Origin: Pavona decussata
Taxonomy: Eukaryota
NCBI GenBank assembly: GCA_977016875.1
Contig: CDRNST010000293.1
Location: forward strand, 1,426,001-1,490,000
Reading direction: 5' to 3'
DNA: 64,000 bases
Shown here piece after piece: positions 16,725 to 64,000 of this stretch. The notes below the pieces were generated by a model. That model worked only from the letters and a program-made list of their open reading frames with translations. It did no database searches and was not told where the DNA came from. Each line of letters starts with the position of its first letter. Position 1 is the first letter of the stretch. The position numbers and the translations under genes were made by a program.

Positions 16725-17065
16725 TTAAGTTGTTTCGTAGAAAGTTTCTATTTCATCCGGTTGGAAGTTATGGTAACTTCCTGTGAGGAATGTTCGTGTA
16801 AAGTCGCTGCCATAGCTGTACCCACTGGGTGTTGCGTAGGTGTATCCAAGGTTTTCGTATGAATTTATTTTTGATGAGGCGTAGTCAGATACGTAAATGT
16901 CATGACCCCCGAAAGTAGGTCCATAAGAGGAGCAGCTGTATGTGGAATGAGCCCTTTGATAACTATATTGTCCTGTTTGAGTCAGTTTCACTGGCGCCCA
17001 TCCTGGCTTGTTTACCAGTGAAAACAGGAAAGCTTTCGAATCGTATCGATAACCACAACTGGAAA
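16725..17065 (-). CDS. Copy B exon 17: C-terminal half of TLDc domain
   Basis: D.KAFLFSL..., YGPTFGG.HDIYV, FL.G...F..DEIETF motifs; stop codon at 16727-16725. Confidence 0.88.
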
Positions 17066-20000
17066 CTAACAAGGAAATAAAGAAATAAAAAAATCAAACA
17101 AACTGACACATTCTTCTGATGATTACCCCATGGGATAAAGGTAAAGTCGCACTTCAAGCCTAAGTCGGCCACACAGCGGGTAGGAGATTAACCTGATCAC
17201 CTAAGTATGAAACAACTAGGAGTACTACTCCAGCCGACCTACATCCCCTCCCCCCCGAGTCGCAATGCGTCAATCACAGGACTATCCCAGACAGTCTTTT
17301 GCCGGTACTCACTTGTACACTAAGGAAGATAGTGAGACAATGCGGAGTTAAGGCTACTCTGTGACAAAACTACGCGACAATATAGAGACCAGCTTAGCCT
17401 TGATCTGACGCTTCGATCAACCGATTAAAAAATCCAACCCGCTAACCATTTCAAGTTGTCACAAAGAATCACCCAGTACCTCTAGTGAACGAAAAAGCGT
17501 GCAAACACAGACGCGTCTCATTGCTCAAAACTGGTGCTTCACTTAGGCCCGGTTCATACGTCGAACTTTACATGAGCCGAACCTAATCATTTGGTTCGGC
17601 GCATGTAAAGATCGACGTATGAATCAGTTAGGATCGACAGAATTGTATTTGGGTCGACCCGCCGTTCTATTCGACTGCGCCAGTCGAATAGAACGGCAAA
17701 AGTTCGACTTCGATTTAGACGTCGAATTTTTCATGTGCCGAACCAAATGCATACGTTACGTATAAATTATATAAATTATATCTATCCCAGAGGTCTGTGC
17801 ATTCTCTCGACTTGGCATGTGCGCAAAGGACTTCATTCTGAACAAGATGGCGGGAAAAGAGGAATGTGCTTGTTCTTCTTGTTCCAAAACAACTGAATAT
17901 ACTTCTCTGAGATGCGAAAGATAAAAAAAAAAAACGAATCTATCCTTGAAGTGCACACGCACTTTAAACTGACAGAAACTTTCCAATACAGGCTCTATCA
18001 AAGGCGACGCATCAAGACTTCTCAGAACAAGATCTTCAAAAACAACATTTGAAGAAAACATTACTCTATTCAAACAGAGATTATGCAACAGAGGTTACCT
18101 CGATAACCTTATAAATAAAACTCTTTCAGAAGTCAACCTCCGCGAAAGAATGTCGGCACTACAAAACAAACTAAAAACCTGCAAAAACATTTTGAGCTTT
18201 GTTATGGAATATCGCCCTTCTGTACCTAACCTAAAACAATTCAGATGAGTAAATACAGGAGCCATAATCAGGGATGGAGACCGTAAGTGTGGGGTCCACG
18301 CGTCCCCATGAGTTGTACCATAAAAATCTATTCAGTTTAGAAAAAATTGCTCCCCCCCCCCCCCCCTCACGTCATAAACCCGCGTGAATACACGAAAATT
18401 TGCGTGCGGCTTCTACCTTATATGTGACACGCAAAGCAGCTGACAAAAAATTCACTAAAGATAAAAAATTCCTTACCTGTCTGAGTACATGTCCGTAGAG
18501 TGTAAGCTTTTTTATTCATCCAACAGTAGCAACGTACGCAGCGCCACCGTTTTGGCGCCTTTTTGACTTTACGGTAAGAGTCATGTATCAATAGGCCGCT
18601 TATTCCAACTTTTCCCATCTTCTTTCAATTGTTACCTTTTCCTTGTGAGAGTCTAATTCCTTAAATGTTGGCACTGAGGAGATATTCCCTGGCAGAATTT
18701 TAAAATTTGGACGCCATTTTGAACGGGTAGAAAAAAATTTCAATTTCTCCACGCGCGATCCTGGCCGTTTACGCGCGTGCGCGCACGCGCGTATGGCGCA
18801 ATTTTTTTCTGAAAATAGATTTTTTGGTACAACACATGGGGACAAGCCCACAAATCAAAATGGCATCTCGTTACGGTCTCCATCCCTGATTATCTCTCCT
18901 GGTAAATGACACTGCACTTGATAGAAAATCAGCCTCTGCTAAGGGAGATCTACAAAGACCCTTCCTAGTTCCTTACTTTCGTACAGAAAAGGGAGATCTT
19001 TGAAAGACGTACTAGTAAGAGCAAATTAGCTTTGAAGGTCATATTCTTCCTATCTCGACCAGTAGGAGCCGTGTTTGGCCTATCTTTATTATTTTACCAA
19101 ACAAGTGAATTCTAAATCATCTTTCCCGCCATTTTGAATCTTGTTGAGTAAAAACAGCAGCCGCTGACCACGAAAATCTACTTTCTCACCTTAGCTTTAA
19201 TTAAGTTCGACTTCAGTTAGGTTCGACGTCTGAATCAACTGCCGAACTTAATTATTTGGGTCGACCTTAATAGGTATTAGGTTCGGCTCATGTAAAGTTC
19301 GACGTATGAACCGGGCCTTAGGGATTGATTCAAGGCTAACAACAAGGTAGTCACTAATCTTTGGAGCACTGACATATTTTTTCGGGTTTGCATTCCTTGC
19401 CCAAGAATAATTATAAAAACCCGTAGCGCGTTTGCGCAAGTGAACCCTTTGAAAACTGGAAACATTGGTGGAGGGGGAAGGGAGAGTTAACATTGCAACC
19501 ATCTAAAGACCTCTGTTCAAGATTGTATGTACCCCTTTGGTTAAATGAATTTAACAGTTTAATGAGAAAATCGTCAAGTTTAGTTCAGTATTGCTAGGGA
19601 ACTGAAAAGACTGACACATCTTAAGGTTTCGTTGCATAAGAACACTATGGGCCCGTTTCTTAGTACTTTTTAGTACTTTTTTTTTAATTTAACACATATT
19701 CATCGGATTTACGAGAAAAAGTAGTAGTGATGGTTGTTCTAATATGAGAAGCAAGCAATGAAATACAAAAGGTTTTTTTTTAATTCACTCGATCAGCGCG
19801 GTTAAGTTAATGCTCAGAAGTTTCACTGTATAATTCTGACACATGAAATATTTAAACCAAGATTGCGCCATAAAAAAAAATCAATTTTTAAAACTAGTAA
19901 GTTGTCTAGAGCAGGATCCACAGTTATGCTACACAAATGAAAAGCATAAAAATTACAAGAAGATGAGGGGATATTGAAAGCAATAAACAGTTTTCTTTAG

Positions 20001-23000
20001 TTGAACAACGACAGTAAACGATCTGGCCTATAAAAAATACAAACAACTGATTTTGTTAAATGAAACCAGTGTGCGATGAAATCAGGCAGTGCATCTGATA
20101 TAAACTTAAATATCTATACATGTGTGTCATGTGCTTATTCTTCATATTGGCTGTTTTCGAATTTAGGACCGTTCAGTTAAGATTGGAACAGAAAGTCTTA
20201 GTATCCGAATTAAGGGACCGACTATTTAAAGGAAGTTAAAACCGAGGTTGAGATGGTCGTAGTCTGAATACCACCGCTTTGCCCAAGATCGATTCCGATT
20301 ATTTAGACGAGGTTTAGTCGTGGATTTAGATGAAGCTTACCCGTGGTTTTCGGAGTAATCTTCAAAGCCTGATTTTGGCTTAAGCAAGGTCTAACTTAAC
20401 TTCTGTTCAAACGCGGATGTTACATCCGATTTAAATTCTCTCTGATTTATGATTTGTTTTCTTTCTGCTTTACGACGCAACCCGGTAATTAGCTCTGAGC
20501 TGAGCTATTCCACTCCAATAATGGAGTTAACAGTTTAGGTTTAAAATGATGTTTTGAGGAATTACTGTATTTTAACATTGGTGATTGACAGACTCTTGAT
20601 AAGAAATTCAAATTGTGACTCCATTTTCCAATTATATGATTCAAGGAAAGTTTGTGCTTTTTACCGAGCAAAGCTAACTCCAATACGGAGTTAAAAACAT
20701 CTTTTTTGGAGTTATAATCACTCCAAATATGGTAGGGCCACAACCATGAGTTAAATCAAAGAGTTATTCTAAACGCTTGAAAATTACTGCAAGGTAAATA
20801 AAGTCACTTACTCCATGAGACACTGGCGTATCCTCCAAATATATACTGGCCGACCTTTATTATCGTCACGGTAGGACCCTTGTTATCGCACCCGGAGTGA
20901 AAGGTAGATGCAGCCCAACCATCAACGGACGCACGCCAACACCGCTTCCAGTAAGAAGATTTACTCTGAAGGACAGGTTTGAGCCAGTTGCTTAAAGTGC
21001 CAAGGTAATTATCGTTGTTTTGCAGAATGGATGAATGTCCTAAGCCTTCAATTGAAAAATTATAAAATGTCATCATGAGAGGCAAAACATAAACGATATA
21101 CATATTTTTAAAATATATAGCGTACACGAGAAAGACTGGCTGATTCGATTTCCAAAATCTTCGAAGGCAGTTAAGAAAAATTCCGCGCAATAACTTCTCC
21201 AACCATTAATAATTTTAAGAGGAATTCAAAGCAAAAGTTCATTGAATTTATGATATTTTTTAAAGATCATATTTCATATTTCCAAACCTCCTTCCTTTTG
21301 AGGACAACAATTTAACATTTTGTCGTTTATTTGTTTTTATACAACTTTCAACCTGCATTTAAATCTTGCTATTAATCACGTAGGATGGCTGAATAGCTAA
21401 GAGCCTTAAATAGATACCCACTTTGATACGGGAAGTGGGGGAAGGGGAAAATGTTTTAGTGGACTGGACTATTCGTTGAGTACTGCGCGGGCTATTTGCT
21501 AACAAAACTAGGTCAAATATCTTTTATATCATATAAGTTTCAGCTTATTTAAAAAGATCCTTTAAACGGCCACACTTTTAGAATACTTACCAGCATAACT
21601 ATAATAGCAATCAAAGCCATTTCCCACATATCCACTGTTACACTTGCAGGAATAGGATCCACGTTTGTTTGTACAGGTGGCCAGCTGATGACAGTAAGAT
21701 GTCTCTTTGGTGCATTCATTAAGATCTGAAAAATAATTTAAAATATTAAAAATAAAGTAGTAGAATTTAAGATATCTATTACTGTTACTTATTTATTCCA
21801 AAACAGCAGTAATAGCAGTTGTGTATTTAAACTTCTGGTTTCTCAAAAGTGGAAACATGCACGACTGATGGTCTTAAACAGGAAGGCACAACCAGAACTA
21901 CCTCATTAAATAAAAAGTAGATTTTCTTCTTACAATATTTTTCCATAGACGTACTCGTTAGAAAAACACTGTTTCGCAGGGACTCACACAATTTTTAAGC
22001 CAACTATCGTTTGAATGTGCTCGTAACTAGACAACTGTCATGTCTGTATTAGTTCAATGTATATGTATATCATAGTTTTAGTACATTGTTGTGCTCAGGG
22101 CTCCCATTGATAACAGACAGCTTTTTGCATCTGAAGGGGCTACCCTGAGCGTTATAAATCAATAAAGGTTCTTCTTCTTCTTCTTCATCTTCGGTTCCTC
22201 ACTCTATTTAATCAAAAGGTGAAGCATACTGTTGTAAATAATAAAGGCCCCCGTGTAACTTGAAACTGTCGACAAAATGTTCCCTTCTCTTGTGTCACGC
22301 TTTGAATCTCATTATATTTTGTTTGGTCACTGGTGTCTATCAATCATTCTTCACCAGTTTCAGTTGTAATCAGCCTACCTTTCTTACAAGTATACTGATG
22401 GCAGTCACTGCACTTGACGTCATTCCATTTGTAGTTGTGCTCCACGCCAAGTGCGTGCACGCAGTCTTCTTCTCTAAAATTATTTGGTTGATTCTTAGCC
22501 CAAGCTGTGAAGTCTCCAGCTCCAAGATCCGCCCAAATGAAGCTACCCTCTGTGGAGATGTCATTTAATCCCAGCCAGGATTTTTCGCCATTATGACGAT
22601 GCTGCAAAAACACGTTCTCTTCATTGTTGTTAATGTCGACAAGGACTGATTTTTCTTGACGGCATTTGTTCATCGCTGTGGTCCAGTTTGTGCATGTTTC
22701 ACTTGTATAGTAACAAAAGCCATTGAAATAGCTCCAGCCAGGATCACAGACATCTGTAAATATATCAGAAGAGATTATGAAATCCAGAACTGTAATAACC
22801 AAAGAATAAAACTGCTAACAGGGGCACCCAACGGATCGCTTCGCTAATTTATCTGTTCGGAAGGCCCTTAATCCCTAGTCTCCCTCGCAGCCGTTTTTTG
22901 GGCTGTCACGCAACGCTCCCCTTGTTTTAGGGGGAGCGTTGCGTGACAGCCCAAAAAAACGGCTGCGAGGGAGACTACTTAATCCCCGGCAATTTTCTAA

Positions 23001-26000: not shown

Positions 26001-29000
26001 TTTCCATCAAAATTCTGCATTTCTCTAAGGCATGCCTTAAAAGAGCTCTTTGTAGTATCTTCGAGCCAAATGAGAGCGGCATCATACTCATTTCCTGTCC
26101 TTAAATGTTCTGACGTTATAAGAACCACAGGCGCTTCAGCAAACTTGTCCTAGAAAATTACAAGAAAAGAGGTAGTCGGAAATAGCGAAAATCAGTTGGT
26201 TAACAAGTATATTTAAATGTTTTTACTGTTTCCTGAGATTCCTGGCAGAATGAACATCCAACGTATATATCCATATTATATATTTCGATTCCAAACTACT
26301 TGTTTAGTTGTTTTACACAGAACAAAACTATGACAGGATTGACACTTAGATAATTGCTGATTGTATATCAGAGTTACCTAGAGTGCAGGTTTGGATTTTT
26401 ATTAAATGTTGTTTTCTTACGTCCTACCTTGGGAAAAGTTACATCTGCACAGTTTGTCCCAGACCACCACTTTTGCAGCTGAATCTTTCCAGTCAAGCCC
26501 TCTGGTGGGGCTCCTTGGTACGCGATCCATTCGACAGTTGCAAATGGGTTGAAATTCTCCTTTTTTCTCCCAGTTTGCATAACGCAAACAGTGAAATTTT
26601 TTGGACTGATATTTTCACTCCACGATGTCACTGCGTCGTGGACTGTTACGGAATCGTTAAGTTTCATGTGATTAACGGTGACTTGAACGTAAACCTGTTT
26701 GTCCGGATAGAAGCGGTATGGAGGAAAAGCCACTGTTTTGCAGCTGGAATCGGTCCATTCTGGAACATGGAGGAGTTCTACTCGGCCTCGAACAATTGGA
26801 AAACCTGGTAAACAATTTAACGTGTATAACATTAATTAGTCAAACTGATAACTCACTCTTTGGTTGGTATCTGATCTGCAGCACCTTTTGCAATGTGATC
26901 TAGTTGCTACACTGACAGTTGTGTTGATTAAAATCGCGTTTTTGTTTTAACTTATAGTTTGGTTTTAACCTCTCACCAGTTTGGTAGGTCCCACGTACCC
27001 GATTAACTTGTGGTCTGGCACACGAGACCCTGTTTTTTGGTTATTACGCTTCTGTTTTTGTTGTTAGCTGTCCTTTGAATATTCTGCAGATAGCCGAGTG
27101 AGTTCTTTGCAGAGTACAAGTTTCTCATTTCACAAAAGGAGAATGCACAACTGTATAACATGGTCTTCTGTGGAGCTTTCATGCAAGGTATTATTATAGA
27201 GCATCTCTCTTACCTTCACAACTTCCTGGATGGTACACAAGGTTATTTTCCAGTCCTCTACAGTAACTTAACTCATGCCAGCATTTGTTGTCGTATGTTG
27301 TTCCATTCGCAGTGCACACTGGATCCTGATAGGAGGGACATTGTTCAAAACACTCACAGCGAGCGTCATGCGCACTGTACGTCTTGCACACTCCAAACCG
27401 TGGACAATGCACATTAAGACAGGGATCGAGATCTGTGACAAAAAAAACAACAATTAAAAAATAACTAAATATTTTCTTTAATGTCATACTTGCGTGTAAA
27501 ATGAGAGATTTCTTGAATAGCTTGCTTATTGGCAGTGTAAGTAAAGATAAATAACTTTGGTAAAATTGCAATAAATGAATATAAATAAATTAATTAATTA
27601 AGAAGTTAATTAAAACACAAAACATATCTAAATATAATAAATGAAAAACCAACCCCCAATCACAGCATAGCAGACTGTTAAAGGGTCGTGACCACTTCCT
27701 GATCCCTGTAAGTCTTTTACGCAAATCTTCATACCCTTAAGGCCAACCTCCTGCAAAAAATAATAACAATTTGATAACACTTACTCCCATTTTCATGTTT
27801 AGGTAAAAAGCCAGATCTTTATAATTAATAACTTTAAAAATAATTTGAATTTTTTCCAACGTCCAAATCCAAATCCTACAGAAGGAATGTTTAACGTGTC
27901 TAGCTAGTTCAGCCGTTCATCCCCGTGTGGAACAAGGTACGTTCTGATTCTTATTCTTGGGTCCACTTCCAAAGAAGGATTGTTTAACCTGTCTAGTTCC
28001 CACTAGAGGATTCTTTTACTTGTTTAGTTCATCCGTTCAATAACATTTGCAACAAAGTGGGTTCTGATTCTTTTCTTAGGGTCCCTTCCCACATCAGGAT
28101 TCTTTGACTTGTCTAGTTCATCCGTTCAATCCCATTTGGAACAAAGTGCGTTCTGATACCCTTCTTCCCACAGGAGGGTTGTTTCACTTCTTTAGTTCAG
28201 TCGTTCAACCCCATTTGAAACGAAGTGCGTTCAGTTTCTTTTGTAATGGTCCCTTCCGACAAGGGGATTCTTTTACTTGTCTATTTTAGTAGGTCATCCC
28301 TATCTGGAACAAAGTGCTTTTGTTTCTTTTCTCATGGTCCATTCCCACAGGAGGATTCTTTTAAATTTCCACTTCAGTAGTCCAACCCTATTTGGAACAA
28401 AGTGCGTCCTGATTCTTTTCTCAGTGTCCCCTCCCATAGGAGGATTCTTTTACTTGTCTAGTTTAGCCTTTCAACCCCATTTGGAACAAAGTGCGTTGTG
28501 ATTCTTCTCTCAGGGTCCCTTCCCATAGGTGGATACCTTCAATTGTCTAGTTCAGCACTTCAACCCCATTTAGAAAAAAGTGCGCTCTGTTGCTTTTCTC
28601 AGGGTCCCTTCCCACAGGAGGCTGCTTTTACTTGTCTATTTCAGTAGTTCCACCCAATTTGGAAAAAAGTTCCCTTCTGATTCTTCTCTCGGGGTCCCTT
28701 CCGATACGAGGCTTGATTCACTTGTCTAGTTCGGCAGTTCCACATCATTTGAAACAAAGTGCGTTCTGTTTCTTTTCTCAGGGCCCCATCCCTCAGGAGA
28801 ATTGTTTTACTTGTCTACTTCATCCTTTTAACACCATTTCGAACAAAGTGCGTTGGGATTCTTTTCATGGGGTCCTTTCGAACAGGAGGATTGTTTAGCT
28901 TGTCTAGTTCAGCACTTCTACCCCATTTGGAACAAAGTGCGTTCTGTTTCTTATTACAGGATCCTTTCCAACAGGAGGATTGTTTCACTTGTCTAGTTCA

Positions 29001-47120: not shown

Positions 47121-50100
47121 TTAAGTTGTTTCGTAGAAAGTTTCTACTTCATCCGGTTGGAAGTGATAGTTACTTCCTCCCGCCAAGAATGTTTGTGCAA
47201 AGGTGCTCTGATAGCTGTACCCACTTGGTGCGGCGTAGGTGTAACCAAGGTTTGTGTGTGAATTTGTATTTGATGAAGCGTGGTCATATATACTAAGGTC
47301 CCATCCAGCCCCGAAAATAGGTCCATAAGAGGAGCAACTGTATGTGGAATAAGCCCTGTGAGAACTATATTGTCCTGTTTGAGTCAGTTTCACCGGCGCC
47401 CATCCTGGCTTGTTTACCAACGAAAACAAGAAAGCTTTCGAAGCATATCGATAACCACAACTGGAAACTAACAAGAAAATAAACAAATTAGAAAACAAAC
47501 AAACTGACACATTCTTCTGATGATTAACGCATGGGATAAAGGTAAAGTCGCACTTCAGGTGTAACTGGCCCACACAGCGGGTCGGAGATTAACCTGACCA
47601 CCTTAGTATGAAACAACTAGGAGTACTACTTCAACCCACCTACATCCCCTCCCCCCTGAGTTGTAGTGCGTCCATCACAGGACTAACCTTGACAGTCTTT
47701 TGTCAGTACTTAGCAATACAGTAAGGAAGATAATGAGACAATGCGGAGTTAAAGCTACTCTCTGACAAAACTACGCGACAATATAGAGATCAGCTTAACC
47801 TCCAACCACTGACCCTTCGATCAACCGATTAAAAAATCCAACCTGCTTGCCATTTCCAGTTGTCACAAAATATCACCCAGTATAACAGTTAACGAAAAAG
47901 CTTGCAAACGCAAACGCACGTCATTGCTCACAACTGGTGATTTATTTCGGGATTGATTGAAGGGTAACAACAAGGTGGTCACTAATCGTTGGAGCACTGA
48001 CATATTGTTTCGACTTTGCATTTATTTCCCTAGAACAAAAATACAAAACCCGTAGCGCGTTTGCAAAAGTGAACCCTTTGAGAATTGTAAACGTTGGTGG
48101 AGGGGGAGGGGAGAATTAGAACAATGCAACCATCTGAAGACCTTTGTTCAAGATTGTAAATACTCCTTTGGTTTAATGAACTTTACAGTTTAATGAAAAA
48201 ATCGTGAAGTTTAGTTATCACTAGAGAAGCAAAAAAGAGTTAAGTTCTTGCCATAAACGGCAAAAAATTGTCTTTTAGAAATTTAACACATATTCATCGG
48301 ATTTACGAGAAAAAGTAGTAGCGATGGTTGTTCTAATATGAGAACCAAACAATGAAATACAGAAGTTTCTCTTTTTTTAATTCACTTGATCAGCGCGGTT
48401 AAGTAAATGTCCAGTGAGTTTCACTCTAAAATCCTCACACACATAAAGGTTCAATTATTAAAAGACAGTTTAGACGGTGTTTACCAAAACCACGTTCTAA
48501 ACCATTTTCAATTTTGCCAACAGTCGTATCTAAACATTGTCTGCTGCTGACACTAACAAGAAGGCTTGCCAGCCAGACAAGAAAACTATTTATCTACTTA
48601 AATTACCACTTATAAACAGATTTGGAGGAACACTGATTGTCTTAAGCCGCGGCCTAAGTTAGACTCTGTTTTAATTACTGGCCCTAAATATTTAAAGCAA
48701 GATTGCGCCATAAAAAATCAATGGAAACTACTAAGTGGTCTTGAGAAGGATCCACTTGTAAGCTACATAAATGAAAAGCGTCAAAATAACAAGAGGGTGA
48801 AGGGATATTGAGAGCAATTGAAAGTTTTATTTAGCTGAACAACGACAGTAAACGATCTGGCTTATAGAAGATATGGAGAACTGACTTTGTGAAGTGAAAC
48901 CAGTATGCGATGAAATCAGGCAGCGCATCTGATATAAACTTAAACATATATTCGTGTGTTTCATGTGCTTATTATTTCTTTTGGCTGGTTTTCGAATTAA
49001 GGACCGCTCAATTAAGCTTCAAACAGAAAGCCTTAGTATTCGAACTAAGGGACCGACTATTTAAACGAAGTTAAAAACGTGCTTGACAAAGCCGTAGTCT
49101 AAATACCACCGCTTCTCCCAAGATTCCGGTTATTTAAACGAGGTTTAGTCGTGGATTTAGATAAAGCTTACCCGTGGTTTTTGGAGTAGTAGTCAAAGCC
49201 TGATTTTATGTTTACTTTACGACGCAACCCGATAATTAGCTTTGAGATATTCTAATCCAAAAATAGGGTTAACTGGCAGTTAAGGCTTAAGCCGGCGACA
49301 CACTTGGCCATTTTATACGCCGATCGCCGCAATCGGCGAAAATCGCCAGGTGTGCCAGGTGCAGTGATTGCGATTTTCGCCGATCGGCGTATAAAATCTC
49401 CGATATCTGGCATGTCAGATATTCGCCGGTTTTCGCCAAGTGTGCCCTACCCTATCCCGCGATTTTCTAAGATCATTGCTGCGAATCGCCAGTAAAGCCA
49501 ACCCATCAGGTTGGGCGATTTTATCACATGACTTTTCAAAACTGCCAAATCACTGCAATCGGCGAAAAAATCGCCAGGTGTGTCCGCACTAATCGGTGGC
49601 GTAAATCGCTTGCGATTTTCGCGGGCGATCAAATTCGCCGCGATCAGCGTATAAAATCGTCAGGTTTGTCGCTGGCTTAAAATTGATGTTTTTAAGAGCG
49701 CCTGTCCGTAAAAATCAAACATATCGTGGCAAGGGTGAAATATTCGATTTCTTTCATATTTTAATGTCAGATAGGCTAGGATATAACTTAAATCACTGTA
49801 TAGTTTTTTCGGTAAAATATCCTTTTATTTCAAAGAAATATGCAAATAACGAAAATCCGTTAAACTTGTCATTAGAGGCCCCTAATTATTACACGGGTTT
49901 GAGAGCCTCGCTTGCAAAAACCAATCATTTTACCGCTTTTAAAACACTCAAATCTTTATTTACAATGTTTAAATATCTGTTGGAATGATTTTGGGAAATA
50001 TTGCGCCGATCTGTTTATGCGAAATAATTTAATTTCGAAGGCAAACAATTCACTGCAGAAAAAGTACTTCGTGAATAAAATTAATTTTCATCATGTGCGA

Positions 50101-53100
50101 AACCTTCAAATCGATTAAGCTTCTGGTGGTTGGATGTTAGAAGGATGGTCTATAGATTCCTGCAAAAATTTCTTTGGGCAATTGATTAAGAGCAATGCGA
50201 GAGCTCTTCAAAGTCCGTAAAAAATGCAAATATTTGACCCTCAGCGGTAAACTTTGAAGTTGCGGGTCAGACATATATTTTAGGCCGTGTACATGTCTTG
50301 ACCCGTATTAGGTTAGCACGTAGCACATTTCGAAATGTTCTAACCTGGTAATATGCTGTAAAAGACAGGTCCAAAGGCCATTTTAGCGCGATTCTCTGGT
50401 CGCTCGTCGCACAAGTTTGAGCCGGCTGTTTGTACTGAAACGTCCGATGTACACAACGCAAACTGGTCGAACACGAAATACAAATCTTTGATCAACTTTC
50501 GGCGCATTTTATCAAGACTGCGTCTTTTTCGACGGCTAAGTCATTGGTGAAGTATTGCTTGGCTTACAGTAGCTTACAGTGCAAGAAAATCTTTTATCTG
50601 ATCGCTGCTAGAATGACTATGTCGGCGCTTTCAGTCTATCTTGCATTGCATGCAGGCAGCCGTTTGCTCGTGACGCAATACAATGTCATGGACATTTTAG
50701 GGGGGTGGAGGAAGGTCAAAATGGGAAAATGCTTGATTACTGAACAGGTTTACTCAAGGCAGCAACCACAACAATTAAGATAGTGATACCTTTAGTTACG
50801 TTCTTTTTCACTTGCTAAAATCCAGATAATTTATTCATTCGCGAATTCGTTTGCGTGCGCGGGCTGTCTTGTTAGGAGCGGCGGGGGGTGGGGGTGAGAT
50901 TACATTTTACAAAAATATGAAGAGCACTACATCTTTTAGCTATTTCTTTCAATTTTTTTAATACAATAGATTCTAGTATCAAACCAAAAAACCGAAGAGA
51001 AAGGGTTTTTTTTCACGCAGATGACCCTAAATAGCGCATTGTGCTGAGCAATAGCTATGAAAGAACTCACACCTACGAAAACTATTGCCTTTCGTTTGTT
51101 TTCCTGAGCTGAGTTAGTGGAATCCTATCACCAATTTTTTTTCCATTCTTCCGTAAGTCTGGGTGTCTTGTGGCTTCGGGTGGTCATTCACTTGCGTGTT
51201 TCTTCTTTCGGGGTGTTGTTTTTCAAATACTATCAAATAATGTCTAAATTAAACAATACTTAATTTGAAGTTCTTCCTAAATTTAAAAATAAAATCGCTT
51301 AAAAAGTTCAGTCAAATTTATGGCTATAGCTATGGACATTAGGCGTGAGAAAAAAATCGCCAAAAAGTTACTAAGTAAACAAACCTTTGTCGTGCTAGTT
51401 ACTTGGCGCCGCCCGTTTGTTTATTTAGAGGGGGGCACAAGTGAATTTTTTGAAGTCAAGTTTATTACACTGAAAATGGAGGGTTGTTTAAAGCCTTTGT
51501 TGGTGGTACAACACTAAGACTATGCGGCACAAACCACCAAACGTGTGTGGATGCTACCTGAAGGAAATTATGGTGTTACGACGTAATGCGCGTGGGCCAC
51601 AACATTATCCGTCCCAAGAGCACCCCTCCTGTCAGAAGCCCCACCCTACGCTAGCACCACTGCCACCACATAAGCACCGGCTATTATTTATCAACTGAAG
51701 GATCGGAACATTTTTTTTGTGAGAGATAGGGGGAGAGGGGGTGGGGTGCTTACTTGTTTTCAATATTAGATAAATGGAGGAGAGGAAGGCATATCAAATT
51801 TGAGGACGAAACTTTGGTTAAGTCAACAGACCGCCATAACCTGTTACTAGCCCTATCCACCCGTCAAGGGCAGCACACTTACCTACAGGGATCAGAGTTA
51901 TGTCTAGTCGATCAACCTACCACTTACAAGCTGTTATAGCCTTGCGCAAGCTGTTTAGCTGAGGTAGTTTTTTTCAAGTTTGGGTGAACGGTCTAGCATA
52001 AGTAATAAGAATAAGGAAAATAAAGGCCCAAAAACTGTTACATCTAAGAATAGTGCTGGCCTGCAACCAGGGCATATTGTGGCTTACTTAGATAAAGCAA
52101 GCAAGGGCAGACGAAATTCCTTAAATATTAAAATCGGGTTTTTTTTTTAGTTTTCAAAGCTAGAGTATGTAGTAGTACCAGGACTAGTACCGAATGCAGC
52201 CCTCGCCCACTCCCTTAAAATGCCCATGACATGGATACTATGACGAACAGATGCCTGCAATGAGGGGTATTTTTTTGTTTTTGTTTGTTTCTATTGCATT
52301 TAAAGGTGGAAAGAACTAGCTAAGGGATGTGCAGTGATCTTCATCAGTAAATACTGATGCTCTTTGGTAAAATCTTATTCCCCCCGCCCCACAACCCCCC
52401 CCCCCCCCCCTTCTCCACAGCAACGCATCCAACAACCCAGCCCGTGCGCGGCGCGCAAACGAATTCGCCAGTGAATAAATTATCTGGATTTTAGCTAGAG
52501 AAAAAGGAACGTAACTGAAGGTTATCACTATCTTAATTGTTGTTGTTGTTGCTCACTTGAATATGTTCATGTTCAGTTATCAAGCATTTCGCATTTTCAC
52601 CCTACTCCACCCCCCTGAAATGTCCATGACATTGTTTTGAGTGACGAGCAAACGGCTGCCTGCATGCAATGCAAGATAGACTGAAAGCGCCGACATTTTT
52701 TGTCATTCTAGCAGCGATCAGATAAAAGATTTTCTTGCACTGTAAGCTACTGTAAGCCAAGCAATACTTCACCAATGACTTAGCCGTCGAAGAAGACGCA
52801 GTCTTGATGAAGTGCCCCGAAAGTTGGTCAAAGATTTGTATTCCACCAGCTTGCGTGGTGTACGATTTTAAAAGTACAAACGGCCGGCTCAAACTTATGT
52901 GACGAGCGACCAGAGAATCGTGCTTAAATGACCTTTGGACCTGTCTTTTACAGCATATTATCAGGTTAGAACATTTCGAAATGTGCTATGTGCTTATTTT
53001 AACCTAATACGGGTCAAGACATGTACACGGACTAAAATGCATGTCTGACCCGCAACTTCAAAGTTTACCGCTGAGGGTCAAATATTTGCATTTTTACGGA

Positions 53101-56100
53101 CTTTGAAAAGCTCCCGCATCGCTCCTAATCATTTGCCCAAAGAAATTTTTGCAGGAATCTATAGACCATCCTTCTAACATCCAACCACTAGAAGCTCAAT
53201 CGATTTGAAGGATTCGCACATGGTAAAAATTAATTTTATTCACGAAGTACTTTTTCTGCAGTGAATTGTTTGCCTTCGAAATTAAATTATTTCGCATAAA
53301 CAGAACGACGCAATATTTCCCAAAATCATTCCAACAGATATTTAAACATTGTAAAAAAAAGATTTGAGTGTTTTAAAAGCGGTAGAATGATTTGTTTTCG
53401 CACACGAGGCTGTCAAACTCGAGTAATAATTTAGCGCCTCAAATGACGATTTTAACGGATTTTCGTTGTTTTCATATTTCTTTGAAATAAAAGGATATTT
53501 CACCTAAAAAACTGTACAGTGATTTTAGTTATATCCTAGCCTATCTGACATTAAAATATGAAAGAAATCGAATTTTCAACCCTTGCCGCGAAATTTAGAA
53601 TTTGTCTGATTTTTACAGACAGCGCTCTTAAGAGTTATCGTGTTAATTCGTAACATCGGTGATTTTACTCTTTATTAAAAATATAGATTATGACGGAGTC
53701 CATTTCTCAATTATATACTTCAAGTAAAGTTCGTGCTATTTATCGAGTAAACGTCAACTCCAATACAAGGTTGAGTACACCTCCTTTGGATTTATAATCA
53801 CTCCAAACAAGAAAAGGACACCACCAGGAGTTAACTCCACTTCATAGTGTTATTCTAACCCCTGGAAAACTACTGTGTATTTAAAATACTAACTTGATAT
53901 ACGGTAAGGTAAATAAAGTCACTTACTCCATGAGACACTGGCGTATCCTCCAAATATATACTGGCCGACCTTTATTATCGTCACAGTAGGACCCTTGTTA
54001 TCGCACCCGGAGTGAAAGGTAGACGCAGCCCAACCATCAACGGACGCGCGCCAACATCGTTTCCAGGGAGATGACTTGCTTTGCACAACGGGCTTTAGCC
54101 AGGTGTTCAATGCAGTCAGGTATTTGTTGCTCTTTCTTAGGATGGCTGAGCTTGCTAAACCAGCTAAAACAAAAAAAATATACATGGTGTAGAGCGACGA
54201 TGCACTGATCACATAAGTTAAGATCTGTAATGGTTTTTGAAAGGAGTTCCCGGAAAATTTGTGTTAAAACCTTTATCTGAGCTTTTGGCGAAGTTTATAT
54301 TGTCTGACAGTCTGACAGTCTGACAGTCTGACAGTCTGACAGTCTGACATTAAAGAAGATGTGAAAGGAAAGAAAGCCACATAATATTTTCAACCTAACT
54401 CGCTGACCAATCCAGAAATTCGGTATGAATTGTTTCGTTCTAGCTGGTTTGCTTGTGAGGTTCGGGAATTCTTGTCACACGTGCAGTCAGAGCGAGCCGT
54501 CTATGGAGAATTAGAATCAGAGACCCCTAAAGCTAACCAGATTCCGGGTTTGACTAATACTTGGTCGCTTTGAGATGCTAGTTATCATTATGTCATTAAG
54601 TAAAGAAAATTTGGTCGTGTAGATTTTAGTTGCATGTCCCAAACATTCCGAGCAACACATTTTCATGTTTTATGAGCGGACTTTTCAGTGGATTTGTTGT
54701 AATTGTAGTTGTAATTCAGAAAACCAACAGTCGCTGAATATTAGGAAACTTCAAGAAGAATGGGGAGCCAGTGATAAATCTGAGATACTAATGATCTATA
54801 GGAAAATTTTACTTTGAACTTTGCAAACATGACATGAATCTGAAAAGCAGATGCCGAACAACTTTTTATCTTGTCAGGTTTATGATACCTTGTGTCATAT
54901 CAATAGCACGCGGGCGTGAACAGTGTCATACTTTATCGTTTATGTAAAAAGTGTCAAAAATTGTTCTTTTATTCCAGGAATTTTCTTATTCATTTCTAGG
55001 AGCCCTTTTTGTTTGAAATGGAGCTTTTAATAGCTGGGCATGTCGAAGATTACTTCTAACATGAGCTGCACAATTAATGACGTTGCAAATGTTAAAGTCA
55101 TTTCCTTGGCAGTGCGAACATTTCGGGAAGAGTGGAGCTAGCTGTTAAAGTTTCAGAAAACAGATGTCACGTCAGAACTCTAGGAATTGAACTAAAACAT
55201 TCGCACTTTCCGCAGCAAAACTCGAAATTGATCAGAAAAGGAAAATGAAAAATGATTGAAAAATGATTGGTTTTGAAATAGTAAGACATACTAAGCACCA
55301 TGCCATTAATATTTGTTATTAAAACAACAGGCCATTTCCGAGTTGCTGCGAACCTCACTATGAAAGCAAGGCTAAGTGTAAAAATAAGTTTTGTTTGCAT
55401 ATGAATGAAAGGTAATTTTAGTAACAAAAACTTTCAAAGCAACTCGCAAATGGTCTTTTGCAACTCTTACCTGCGTAATTATAGCATCCAAAGCCGTCTC
55501 CAAGGTAACCTTGGTTACACTTGCAGGAGTATGAACCCCGGAACAGGTTGCGAACTCATGACAGTAGTTCCGCTGCCTTGAGCATTCGTTTAAATCTAAT
55601 CAACAAAATGAAAAATACATTAATCTTTGTACGCAATAGCGGCTTTATCGTTGTCAGCGTTAGCATCCCAACCAGACGTTTGAATGTGCGATCGAGAGTC
55701 GAACTAAACAGCAAAACAGACTACTCATCCTGTGATGTGTACTCTAATGAATGTAGCTAAGGGTGTCCAAGATTTCTTCTAATGTGAGCAGCACAATTAC
55801 TGATGTCGCACTTAAAGTCATTTCCTTAAGTCTACTAATCTCCCCTTCAAATCTACGAATTACATCTTGTGGCAAATAGTCACGGGTGTCTATTAATCAT
55901 ACTTCACCAGTTTAGTTTGTAATCAGCCTACCTTTCTTACAAGTATACTGATGGCAGTCACTGCATTTCACGTCATTCCATTTGTAGTTGTGCTCCACGC
56001 CAAGTGCGTGCACGCAGTCTTCTTGTCTAAAATTATTTGGTTGATTTTTAGCCCAAGCTGTGAAGTTTCCAGCTCCACGATCCGCCCAAGTGAAAGTACC

Positions 56101-58113
56101 CTCTGTGGAGATGTCATTCAATCCCAGCCAAGATTTTTCACCATTATGCCGATGTTGCAAAAACACGTTTTCTTCATTATTGTTAATGTCAACAAGGACT
56201 GAGTTTTCTTGACGGCATTTGTTTAGCGCTGTGGTCCAGTTTGTGCATGTTTCACTTGTATAGTAACAAAATCCATTGAAATAGCTCCAGTCAGGATCAC
56301 AGATGTCTGCAATTAAACAATAAGAGATTCAGTTACAATTTAGAACTGTTATAACCAAAGAATAAAATTGATAATCAATAATTTCGTTATTAGCCAATAT
56401 TAATCAATGTTGATTAATGAATTGATATTTTGAAATCAGTCATGATTCAGTAAGGACAATCAATCAATTTATTAATATCAAATCGTGGGATGAGGTTGCT
56501 CTCTATATCCGAGCCTGAGGCTCATGTGTAAAACGCATGAAAATAGGAAGCATGCAAAGTAACTTAACTTACAAAAGACAATCCAGGAAACAAATTTAAG
56601 TATTTAGTAAACATTAAAATGAAAATGAAAATGAAAATGAAATATATTAACAATATTAAAATAAGTAAATAAGTAAAAATATATTTGAAATGCTTTACCC
56701 AACCACGTTAACAGTATAAAAAACTAAAAACGTGTATGTATAATCCCAAGTTAATAAAACTAAATTATGATACCACCCCAAATTCAAACAGATGATGCTA
56801 ACATATTTGCAGATGGGTGACGTGTTATTGTTGGAAATACATGTACGCTCTTAGCGAAATGTCCTCAATGGATTTAGAGACTGTTTAGACACTATTTACG
56901 CATTCATGAACTGAATAGGTTTCCAGACGTTTTCAGAAGCTATTTTGAGCCAACTGTTTTTTTTCTTAAGGTGGGAAATTACCGGTTAAATTAGTTTTTG
57001 GCAGGTTGTGATTCTAGAAAGTTCTTTCACGTTATACAAGCGAATGCGTATTGTTCACTCTCTCTCTGCCTTTGAATAAAAGTTACGTGTACCTAGTACT
57101 GGATTCGTTTCTGACTGTTGACGCGTTGGTGAACGAAACTTCTCAAAAGCTATCATTCCGAGTAAGATGATCAACTATAACCGTTGTTGTGCTTAATAAG
57201 GCTGATAACAGATCGATATCAAAGGGAATTAATGAATACAATTAAGGAGACTGTGGTTGACCATCCGATTGGCCCATGCAAAGATGAGACTTTATTGAAA
57301 ACCAAAGTGCCATGCTGTGCCTCTCCTTTTTTGCCTCAGAATTTTTGCTGAGCGATCCCGATCTCACAGATTTCACTTCTCATCGGAAGTACTGCGTATG
57401 ATCTTACAATATTATTTGTGGATGTTACGATGTTTTATTCTCCTCATTAAGTTGAAATTATCAGGCAAGGGCCAAGCATTTACTGACCTGTAAGCACCGC
57501 ATAACTCACGGACAGCGGATCATATCTGGTCTGGTACAATTCCTTAACACAGACTCTGAAGCCAGAGGAATTCATGTTCTGCAGAGGAAAACTTTAATTA
57601 ATGCTCACTTGCTACTCTAGTTAGAGGTTAAGAGTGTTTCCCAAATATCTGAATACTTCATATATTTCATTGCTAACGGATGAACGTGCCTGAAACATGA
57701 AATTCAAAACCTATAATGCCGTAGTATTTATTAGAAAGGAATATTCATGCAACCTAACGTTGTTGAATTGTTTCACCATTTTCAAACTCACAGGTTTTGT
57801 CGCTGACATTGTGTTGCTATAGGAACAAGAGATCGAAAGTTAAAAGGCAATATTTTCAATAAAGAAAAGGGAAAAAACCCTCAACAACCCTCAACAACCC
57901 TCATTAGAAAGGTTATTTTCCATTGGTATAGTTGGAGTTTCTATAAAACAAAGCTTTACCTCGATCCACGTTGTGATGCCGTTGTGTACTGGAGCCGAGT
58001 TTCCACTTGCCGTCGTGCTGTGATTAGCGGATATTAAAATCGTTGGTGTTGAGTTATGAGCTCTTAAAAATGAAACAAACTGCAAAACAAAAGAAACATT
58101 AATACTACTATTT

Positions 58114-61100: not shown

Positions 61101-64000
61101 GTTCTTTGCAGAGTACAAGTTTCTCGTGTCACCAAAGAAGACTGTACAACTGTATAATATGGTCGTCTGTTGAGCTTTTATGCAAAGTAGTATTATAGAG
61201 TATCTCTCTTACCTTCACAACTTCCTGGATGGTACACCAGGTTATTTTCCAGTCCTCTACAGTAACTTAACTCATGCCAGCATTTGTTGTCGTATGTTGT
61301 TCCATTCGCAGTGCACACTGGATCCTGATAGGAGGGACATTGTTCAAAACACTCACAGCGAGCGTCATGCGCACTGTACGTCTTGCACACTCCAAACCGT
61401 GGACAATGCACATTAAGGCACGGATTGAGATCTGCAACAAAAAAAACGACAATTAAAAATAACTAAATATTTTCTTCAATGTCATACTTGCGTGTAAAAT
61501 GAGAGATTTCTTGAATGTCTTGCTTCTTGGCATTGTAAGTAAAGATTAATAACTTTGGTAAAAATGTAAAAAATGACTAGAAATAAATTAATTTATTAAA
61601 AAGTAACTTAAAACACAAAAAATATCTAAATATAATAAATGAAAAACCAACCCCCAATGACAGCATAGCCGACTGTCAAGGGGTCGTGACCGCTTCCTGA
61701 CCCCTGTAAGTCTTTAACGCACATCTTCATACCCTTAAGGCCAACTTCCTGCAAAAAATGATAACAATATGATAACACTTACTCCCTTTTTCATGTTTAG
61801 GTAAAAAGACAGAGCTTTATAATTTATAACTTTAAAAATATTTTGAATTTTTTCCAAGGTCGTTCCAGGCTCAAATCCCACAGATGGAATGTTTAATGTG
61901 TCTAGCTAGTTCAGCAGTTCATGCCCATTTGGAACAAAGTACGTTCTGATACTTATCGTTGCTCCACTTCCAAAGGAGGCTTGTTTAACTTGTCTAGTTC
62001 ATCCGTTCAACCCCATTTGAAACAAATTGGGTTCTGATTTTCTCCCGGGGTCCTTTCCGAACAGAGGATTGTTTCACTTGTCTAGTACAGCAGTTCAACC
62101 CCATTTGAAACAAACTGTGTACTGATTCTTTTCTCAGAGTCCCCTCCCAAAGAAGAATTGTTTAAATTATCTAGATAATCCTTTCAACCCCACTTGCAGC
62201 AAAGTGCGTTCTAATTCTCAACCCAGGGTCCCTTTCCACAAACGGATTGTTCCACTTGTCCAGTCAGCAGTTCAAACCCATTTTGAAAAAAGTATGTTCT
62301 GATTATTTTGTCTAGTTCACCATTTGGAACAAAGTTCGTTCGGATTCTTTCCTCAAGATCCTCTCCCACAGGAGGATTGTTTCACTGGTCTTGTTCAGCA
62401 GTTCAACCCCATTTTGAACAAACTGTGTTCTGATTCTAGTGTGACGTTCCTCTTCAAAAAGAGGATTTTTTAAGTTGTCTAGTTCTGCATTTCAACCCAA
62501 GTTGGAATAATTACGTTCTGATTCTTACTCCAGGGACCCTTCCCACTGGAGGATTCTTTTACTTGTTTAGTTCATCCGTTCAATAACATTTGTAACAAAG
62601 TGGGTTCTGATTCTTTTCTTCAGGGTCCCTTCCCACATCAGGATTGTTTGACTTGTCTAGTTCATCCATTCAATCCCATTTGGAACAAAGTGCGTTCTGA
62701 TACCCTTCTTCCCGCAGGAGGGTTATTTCACTTCTCTAGTTCAGTCGTTCAACCCCATTTGAAACGAACTGCGTTCTGTTTCTTTTGTCATGGTCCCTTC
62801 CCACAAGAGGATTCTTTTACTTGTCTATTTCAGTAGTTCATCCCTATTTGGAACAAAGTGCTTTCTGTTTCTTTTCGCATGGTCCATTCCCACAGGAGGA
62901 TTGTTTCACTTGTGTAGTTCAGTCGTTCAGCCCCATATGAAACGAAGTGCGTTCTGTTACTTTTGTCATGGTCCCTTCCAACAAGAGGATTCTTTTAAAT
63001 GTCTACTTCAGTAGTCCAACCCTATTTGGAACAAATTGCGTCCTGGTTCTTTTCTCAGTGTGCCTTCCCATAGGGGGATTATTTTACTTGTCTAGTTTAG
63101 CCTTTCAACCCCATTTGGAACAAAATGCGTTCTGATTCTTCTCTCAGGGTCCCTTCCCATAGGAGGATAGCTTCAATTGTCTAGTTCAGCAGTTGCACCC
63201 CATTTAGAACAAAGTGCGTTCTGTTTCTTATTCCAGGATCCCTTCCGACAGGAAGATTGTTTCACTTGTCTAGTTCAGCACTTAAACACAATTTGGAACA
63301 AAGATCGTTCTGATTCTTTTCTCAGGGTCCCTTCCCACGGGAGGATTGTTTTACTTCTCTATTTCAGTAGTTTCACACCATTTGGAAAAAGTGCATTCTG
63401 ATTCTTATCCCTGGGTCCTTTCCCACAGGAAGATTGTTTCACTTGTTAAGTTCAGAGAGCGTTCAGATTCTTTTCTGAGGGTCCCTTCCCACAGGAGGAT
63501 ATATTCACTTCCCTACTTCAGCAGTTCCACACCATTTGAAACAAGGTGCATTCTGATTCTTTTCTCAGGGTTGCTTCCCACAGGAGGAATCTTTCACTTG
63601 TCTTGTTCAGTCGCTCAAACCCATTTTGAAAAAAGTGCGTTCTTATTCTTTTCCCAGGGTCCCTTCCCACTAGAGTATTGTTTCACTTGTCTAGTTCAGC
63701 AGTTTAAACCCATTTTCAACAAAATGCATTCAGATTATTTTCTTTGGGTCTCTTCTCACAGGATGATTGTTTAACTTGTCTCATTCAGAAAGAGTTAAAC
63801 CCAGTTTGAAAAAAGTGCTTTCTGTTTCTTTTCTCAGGATGCCTTCCCACAGGAGGATTGTGTCACTTGTCTAGTGTAGCCGTTCAAAGCAATTGGGAAC
63901 AAATTGTGTTCTTTTTCTTGTCCCAGGGTCCCTTCTCACAGGGAAAAATCCGGTCCTATAGAGCGAAAATGAGACAGCTGGTAATATCATACCTCCACCC
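47121..64000 (-). CDS. Copy C (3' part, enters from the right edge), exons 6(part)-17; frameshift in EGF exon 15, so a truncated allele, pseudogene or exon-skipping form
   Basis: Exons: >64000-63993, 61748-61652, 61431-61213, 60803-60427, 60149-59982, 59423-59313, 58079-57960, 57578-57488, 56306-55932, 55595-55471 (125 nt, frame-breaking), 54163-53927, 47467-47121. All other exons are open with GT-AG sites. Confidence 0.85.
49291..49676. mobile_element. MITE (GCCGGCGACACAC...GTTTGTCGCTGGC) with internal ATCGCC-rich subrepeats
   Basis: TTAA on both flanks (TA vs TTAA target ambiguous); empty site GGTTTAAAATG in copy B (~20540). Confidence 0.8.
49696..53627. mobile_element. 3.9-kb foldback-like non-autonomous DNA element with ~1.25-kb inverted arms and TTAA target duplication
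   Basis: 49696-~50950 is the reverse complement of ~52310-53627; TTAA at 49692-49695 and 53628-53631; absent from copy B. Confidence 0.9.
54303..54348. repeat. (TCTGACAG)n 8-bp tandem repeat
   Basis: About 6 exact units. Confidence 0.9.
55328..55458. mobile_element. Small MITE (AGGCCATTTCCGAGTTGC...GCAACTCGCAAATGGTCT)
   Basis: 18-bp imperfect inverted termini, about 12 nt into intron 15 from the exon 15 donor. Confidence 0.6.
58112..58690 (-). mobile_element. 5'-truncated CR1/L2-type LINE 3' end
   Basis: LEERRK...L.LVYKC....AP.Y....F......YNLRG...L.LP.......KSFSF.AAKLWNSLP..VR......FK, followed by a (TAAA)n tail; absent from copy B. Confidence 0.85.
61870..63945. repeat. ~89-bp tandem satellite (~23 units) in intron 6 of copy C
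   Basis: Same unit as 27870-29672, with different unit gains and losses. Confidence 0.95.

Follow-up and report, generated by a model that had tools for sequence, protein, structure and literature searches.

The stretch of DNA analysed here, 64,000 nucleotides of the coral Pavona decussata (positions 1,426,001 to 1,490,000 of contig CDRNST010000293.1, assembly GCA_977016875.1; hereafter the window), is part of the contig that we call C293 and contains a tandem duplication of ~33 kb, each unit of which carries one minus-strand multi-exon gene. We refer to the two genes as copies B and C. Their last exon, exon 17, is assigned from an RNA joint and the modelled fold of a homolog to the C-terminal half of a TLDc domain, and in it a small class of codons is replaced considerably faster than synonymous sites. 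Our preferred reading, to which we give a probability of about 0.65, is that recurrent diversifying selection acts on patches of exon 17 that lie mostly in loops, that these loops may form a variable contact surface, and that a separate tract with the Kazal and H-type lectin exons has been homogenised.

The contrast between exons can be seen in the comparison of copy B with copy C. The initial annotation of this DNA had estimated about 25 substitutions and two single-residue indels in exon 17, and a single change among the 73 residues of the Kazal exon. The alignment of exon 17 has 28 differing columns, which comprise 26 substitutions and 2 single-residue indels, and the Kazal core differs at one of 73 residues (D to N). 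The pair of motifs used as an example, GPTFG-GHDIYVSDY and GPIFGAGWDLSIYDH, is confirmed, and 11 of the 26 substitutions are to or from Tyr, His or Trp, in agreement with the remark that many changes concern these residues. As had also been described, the frame of exon 17 is open and its flanks can still be aligned, with 84-90% identity between B and C. The near-invariance claimed for the lectin exons holds for one H-type lectin piece (0 of 50 residues, 25973-26128) but not to the same degree for the others, which have 5 changes in 122 residues and 4 in 41; the numbering of exons 10 and 11 in that claim is not exactly matched.

Nonsynonymous (dN) and synonymous (dS) divergence between B and C were calculated for each exon with the Nei-Gojobori method. 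Exon 17 has a dS of 0.240 and a dN of 0.142, whereas the C-type lectin exon, with an equal dS of 0.242, has a dN of 0.032, lower by a factor of 4.4, so that exon 17 cannot be accounted for by older divergence. A proportionally high dS, which the initial annotation had named as an outcome contrary to its idea, was not found, given that the C-type lectin exon shares the dS of exon 17. The H-type lectin pieces have dS values of 0.07-0.20 and dN values of 0-0.055, and the Kazal exon has a dS of 0.072 and a dN of 0.006. Exon 16 has a dN of 0.12 and a dS of 0.68, the latter because B and C carry different versions of its 5' third.

The identity profile of B against C is a mosaic. Identity is 80-90% over exon 17 and its flanks and 90-99% over the region from 25.0 to 27.8 kb of copy B, which includes the Kazal exon, two H-type lectin exons and their introns. 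It falls to ~50% in the region of copy B at ~21.05-22.35 kb, which contains the EGF exon together with the 5' third of exon 16 and is effectively unrelated. The introns between 25.4 and 27.8 kb of B are 93-98% identical to those of C. The near-invariance of the Kazal and H-type lectin exons is thus partly due to the near-identity of the whole tract, introns included (93-99%; dS 0.07-0.12), and this younger or converted tract inflates the contrast of exon 17 with the Kazal exon about threefold.

The statement that the TLDc domain and not the lectins would be the diversifying part is in line with the ratio of dN to dS (omega) of the lectin exons, which is 0.13-0.28 between B and C, but it has to be qualified for the C-type lectin. 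Four of the nine amino acid differences of that exon are clustered in a span of 13 residues immediately ahead of the QPN motif (22500-22540 in B and 56053-56093 in C: GSFIWADLGAGDF vs GTFTWADRGAGNF), and there could be a small variable patch in this lectin too.

We then consider the family to which both copies belong. Searches over the 602 Mb assembly returned 150 matches to exon 17, two of them with stops. Thirty matches, 74-86% identical to copy B, are found in arrays on C293, C25, C26, C20 and C230 and on a further contig, C203, and we define the close family as at least 30 paralogs. The reading frame of exon 17 is open in all 30 extracted copies, and the acceptor site (...ttgttag/tt, with the slash at the boundary) is kept in all of them. 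The highest identity of any paralog to copy B is 86% for exon 17, compared with 98% for exon 16, 99% for the C-type lectin exon, 96% for the H-type lectin exon and 95% for an open reading frame query of the Kazal exon that includes intron-derived residues. The two kinds of lectin exon were compared for B vs C and through these identity tables. In the alignment of the 30 copies of exon 17, long invariant blocks with Gly, Pro and Asp scaffold residues retained throughout alternate with five short variable patches, three of which (patches 1, 2 and 5) bear indels. Nucleotide divergence is 0.152 in the exon, 0.142 in the non-coding DNA upstream of it and 0.176 in that downstream, and since most codons of the exon are conserved and yet its overall divergence equals that of the flanks, the variable codons must outpace the flanks.

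Codon site models (GY94/F3x4, our own implementation, on an IQ-TREE codon tree) were fitted to the 30 paralogs and 113 codons of exon 17. The one-ratio model M0 gives an omega of 0.64, and models with a positively selected class fit far better: twice the log-likelihood difference (2dlnL) is 105.6 for M1a vs M2a (p ~1e-23), 110.7 for M7 vs M8 and 93.0 for M8a vs M8. Under M2a, 59% of the codons have an omega of 0.09, 30% an omega of 1, and 11% an omega of 3.4. For the Kazal exon of the same family, omega is 0.12, 2dlnL is 0.0, and there is no selected class, while exon 16 has an omega of 0.43, a 2dlnL of 12.1 and one selected site. These per-exon ratios and site models are those that the initial annotation had proposed, and its idea that the TLDc domain is the diversifying part stands to the extent that exon 17 is the fastest-changing coding part and that ~10% of its codons have an omega above 1 among the 30 paralogs, with none in the Kazal exon. 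When copy C and two copies that have a stop in exon 16 are left out, 2dlnL is 104.3, so that the signal does not come from relaxed selection after an inactivation of copy C.

A tree-free test was also made, in which variable sites were picked on a random half of the paralogs and measured in the other half, over 200 splits. At the held-out sites, nonsynonymous divergence (pN) is 0.40, synonymous divergence (pS) is 0.32 and the divergence of the flanks is 0.15. The value of pN exceeds that of pS in 88% of the splits; it is 2.7 times the divergence of the flanks, and in none of the splits is it less than 1.9 times that divergence.

The sites with a posterior above 0.9, in the numbering of the copy B exon, are Q32, Q36, H39, the column before G53, H54, Y69, Y74, G85, R90, S96 and Y97. 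They are rich in Tyr, His and Gln, and Tyr, His and Trp together make up 35% of the residues at selected sites vs 13% elsewhere. In the structural model of a homolog, P0003, the sites are located in a loop at 114-123, in a hairpin turn at 135-139 (the x of the G-x-G-x-D motif), and at 153-158, 169-174 and 180-181. Two of the 11 are in regular secondary structure, one in a three-residue strand (152-154) and one in a helix (171-175), and the other nine are outside it. One of the strongest sites also varies within our data: at position 16949, in exon 17 of copy B, run X18 has G>A at ~43% depth, which changes His39 to Tyr, and the variant represents an allele or else a paralog of near-identical sequence.

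The assignment of exon 17 to the TLDc domain comes from its continuity with exon 16 and from the fold of P0003. Exon 16 of copy B matches the Pfam TLD family (PF07534) with 44.6 bits (cut-off 24.5, E 2e-11) over profile positions 10-76 of 170, whereas a Pfam search with the peptide of exon 17 alone, from B or from C, gives no family with an E of up to 0.01. The spliced joint of exons 16 and 17 (17065->20812, CT..AC on the forward strand, which is GT..AG on the minus strand) is present in contigs of three RNA-like runs from one sample, and it was not found in contigs of run X18. The evidence of fold is taken from P0003, a correctly spliced homolog in the databases that stands in for the gene of the window, in which exons were searched singly; it is 68% identical to copy B across exon 17. 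Its AlphaFold model has a pLDDT (predicted local distance difference test) of 94.7, and the top 16 Foldseek matches of this model are all TLDc domains (mEAK7, NCOA7, OXR2 and Skywalker), with E ~1e-8 and template modelling (TM) scores, normalised by target, of 0.7-0.84. The fold of this homolog and the RNA joint together indicate that exon 17 is the C-terminal half of the TLDc domain. By sequence profile against the Protein Data Bank (PDB), the N-terminal half alone aligns and the exon 17 half is not alignable to solved TLDc domains; for this reason, the selected sites cannot be mapped onto the known contact residues of the vacuolar ATPase (V-ATPase).

Upstream of exon 17, three domain assignments are confirmed by Pfam on exons of copy B: the N-terminal half of TLD, the C-type lectin and the Kazal domain. 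The predicted order of the protein is signal peptide, H-type lectin repeats, Kazal, C-type lectin, EGF and a C-terminal TLDc. Kazal, C-type lectin and EGF are extracellular types of module, and a putative hydrophobic start resembling a signal peptide is found in an open reading frame at 36553-36729 (start of the gene at 36729). From these two features we consider the protein to be putatively secreted or located at the surface, and in such an extracellular context, deduced from sequence, it is unlikely that this TLDc binds or regulates the V-ATPase.

According to our preferred reading, ~60% of the codons of exon 17 constitute a strongly conserved scaffold, and ~10%, in five short patches mostly in loops, would have been replaced repeatedly, outpacing both synonymous sites and non-coding flanks. 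In this view, the lectin and Kazal body would be constant among the paralogs while the TLDc head that it bears would differ from one to the next, and the tract with the Kazal and H-type lectin exons and introns would have been homogenised, or duplicated more recently. We infer that the loops could be a variable contact surface, and any binding by them is purely conjectural.

Canonical TLDc proteins (OXR1, NCOA7, TBC1D24/Skywalker, mEAK7 and the yeast Oxr1 and Rtc5) are conserved cytosolic regulators of the V-ATPase, encoded by single or few copies; the molecular role of the domain is still debated. The coral domain resembles them in the fold of the P0003 model, in the Pfam TLD match of exon 16 and in the profile alignment of its N-terminal half. 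It differs from them in being the C-terminal head on extracellular-type modules with a signal-peptide-like start, in the existence of at least 30 tandem paralogs, and in a C-terminal half that is under diversifying selection and is not alignable by sequence to solved structures. In the open literature, we found TLDc described only as a cytosolic domain linked to the V-ATPase, with no link to H-type lectins or to hypervariability.

Families of secreted immune proteins of invertebrates offer a further comparison. The fibrinogen-related proteins of snails are a diversified secreted family of the lectin type. For tachylectin-2 of corals, PMC2880987 reports high amino acid diversity and positive selection. 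The genes studied here are similar to both in coding for multi-domain proteins, here putatively secreted, of a multigene family in which a minority of codons is selected on a conserved scaffold. The difference is that the variable module is a TLDc domain and not a lectin, fibrinogen or immunoglobulin domain, and that the lectins of the same protein look conserved between B and C.

A more specific proposal is that the five loops are a germline-encoded, paralog-diversified binding site similar to a paratope, used together with the constant lectins to discriminate microbes, symbionts or non-self tissue. We hold this to be a tentative possibility, with the odds somewhat against it. If it were true, the TLDc fold would have a second function unrelated to the V-ATPase. 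The results suggest that animals lacking adaptive immunity have a variable recognition module of a new kind, and they provide a concrete list of residues and candidate coral receptors for studies of microbes, symbionts or allorecognition.

The selection could also be real and the TLDc head be its target, if a factor of a pathogen or symbiont binds or cleaves the head and the loops change to escape it. All the evidence of positive selection given above would suit this explanation equally well; a receptor and a target are indistinguishable from sequence alone. However, at least 30 different and mostly open copies that are kept simultaneously fit a recognition repertoire better than a single escaping target, and sites rich in aromatic residues and His are typical of binding surfaces, although this last point is suggestive only. 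We regard escape of a targeted head as unlikely.

Slightly less probable is the absence of any positive selection. The loops would then simply lack constraint (omega near 1), gene conversion acting unevenly on the tandem paralogs would give some exons an invariant and others an old appearance, and recombination would inflate the tests. Several of our observations weigh on this side and against diversifying selection. Taken over the whole of exon 17, omega does not reach 1 (0.59 between B and C, 0.64 in the family), B and C share a clearly homogenised Kazal and H-type lectin tract, and dS varies tenfold among the exons of this pair (0.07 to 0.68). Recombination among paralogs can produce false positives in site-model tests, and 40% of the informative site pairs fail the four-gamete test, a high degree of incompatibility. 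The site models were self-written rather than taken from PAML or HyPhy, and their branch lengths were fixed up to a scale factor. A per-site test with site-specific synonymous rates, run on a grid and of low power, finds 7 positive and 27 negative sites at p<0.05, that is, it confirms just 7 sites; synonymous rates are raised at sites 38, 85 and 96, and site 97 of patch 5 is not robust to synonymous-rate variation, the synonymous rate at site 96/97 being very high. The synonymous divergence of exon 17 (0.25-0.32) is above that of the flanks (0.15), and part of the divergence of the exon may be due to older coalescence or to a mutational process of local action. Moreover, part of the 30 copies may be pseudogenes. 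Against an absence of selection, the selected class has an omega well above 1, and M8a, in which it is fixed at 1, is rejected. The signal holds when each of three segments of exon 17 (33-44 codons) is given its own tree, with 2dlnL values of 52.0, 16.3 and 31.0, the Kazal exon gives no signal under the same recombination regime, and the excess of held-out pN over the flanks recurs in all 200 splits.

A local mutational process without selection for novelty, such as micro-conversion templated by diverged donors, or slippage where the patches are prone to indels, would account for the indels of patches 1, 2 and 5, for the raised synonymous rates at some sites and for a synonymous divergence of 0.32 at variable sites vs 0.25 elsewhere, both above the flanks, but it is very improbable, because the signal survives the removal of gap columns and their neighbours (2dlnL 37.8), held-out pN exceeds pS in most splits, the frame and the Gly, Pro and Asp scaffold are kept in 30 of 30 copies, and a permutation test within exon 17 modelled on the pairwise homoplasy index (PHI) finds no clustering of incompatibility by distance (p 0.54).

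The divergence of copy C as decay following its inactivation was considered and rejected, since its exon 17 keeps all the scaffold residues and the signal in the family is unchanged without it. The exons of copy C that were checked are open within their cores, with the exception of the EGF exon, which has a 7-base gap in the alignment of B and C, beside short C and G runs, and is read in two frames. This break is either a real frameshift, in which case copy C is a pseudogene, or an indel of the assembly. Some other members of the family are probably decaying: exon 16 has an internal TGA in L059 and a TAA at its second codon in L037. As for exon 17, the usual stop is lost in L013, which has 9 extra codons, and L020 ends 2 codons early. 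The coordinates of the features are given in Table 1.

Table 1. Positions in the window of the variable patches, exons and intron discussed in the text; all are on the minus strand.
Feature	Copy	Position	Strand	Basis
Patch 1, residues 32-39, sites 32, 36, 39, indel-prone	C	47349..47372	-	M2a/M8 posteriors >0.99; P0003 loop 114-123
Patch 2, residues 53-55 (G-x-G-x-D), sites 53, 55	C	47301..47309	-	posteriors ~1.0; P0003 hairpin turn 135-139
Patch 3, residues 70-75, sites 70, 75	C	47241..47258	-	posteriors 0.95-0.99; holds after gap-column removal
Patch 4, residues 86-91, sites 86, 91	C	47193..47210	-	posteriors >0.99; holds after gap-column removal
Patch 5, residues 97-99, indel-prone	C	47169..47177	-	posteriors 0.92-1.0
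Exon 17, putative TLDc C-terminal half, open; 2 bases of split codon, 114 codons and TAA (47121-47123)	C	47121..47467	-	translation; tblastn vs B; conserved acceptor
Exon 17, 112 codons and stop (16725-16727)	B	16725..17065	-	open reading frame; 5' boundary from RNA joint
Intron 16-17, phase 1, GT-AG	B	17066..20811	-	RNA joint; donor a/gtaagt
Exon 16, TLDc N-terminal half (5' boundary approximate)	B	20812..21052	-	Pfam PF07534 positions 10-76; 30 paralogs aligned
Exon 16, LAGLASS-type 5' third (IEGLGHS type in B)	C	53927..54167	-	tblastn; 30 paralogs fall into two groups
Kazal exon core, 73 codons, control exon	B	27215..27433	-	Pfam Kazal_2
Kazal exon core	C	61214..61432	-	1/73 residues vs B, dS 0.072
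C-type lectin exon core, 126 codons, QPN...WND motifs, control exon	B	22377..22754	-	Pfam Lectin_C
C-type lectin exon core	C	55930-56307	-	aligned to B 22377..22754
EGF exon, frame shift near 55540	C	55469..55593	-	counterpart in B at 21589-21723; tblastn match split into two pieces that differ in frame

Among the 30 paralogs (loci L031-L060), the 5' third of exon 16 is of one or the other of two markedly different types, IEGLGHSSILQNND... as in copy B (20980-21052) and LAGLASSAILRKNN... as in copy C (54095-54167), which look like two old cassettes shuffled among copies.

The introns of the two copies contain further differences. A repeat or transposon at ~17587-19186, in the last intron of copy B, has no counterpart in copy C, where the alignment shows a gap; its contig depth in run X18 is in the hundreds of thousands, and it is probably a high-copy transposon. 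In copy C, the intron before exon 17 has a specific insertion of 4.2 kb (~49370-53570) flanked by inverted repeats of 1.2 kb that are 89% identical (49692-50858 / 53631-52451). Tandem repeats of 89 bp (~19 units, 75-77% matches) are located at 27997-29668 and 61876-63942, the same intron position in B and C, upstream of the Kazal exon.

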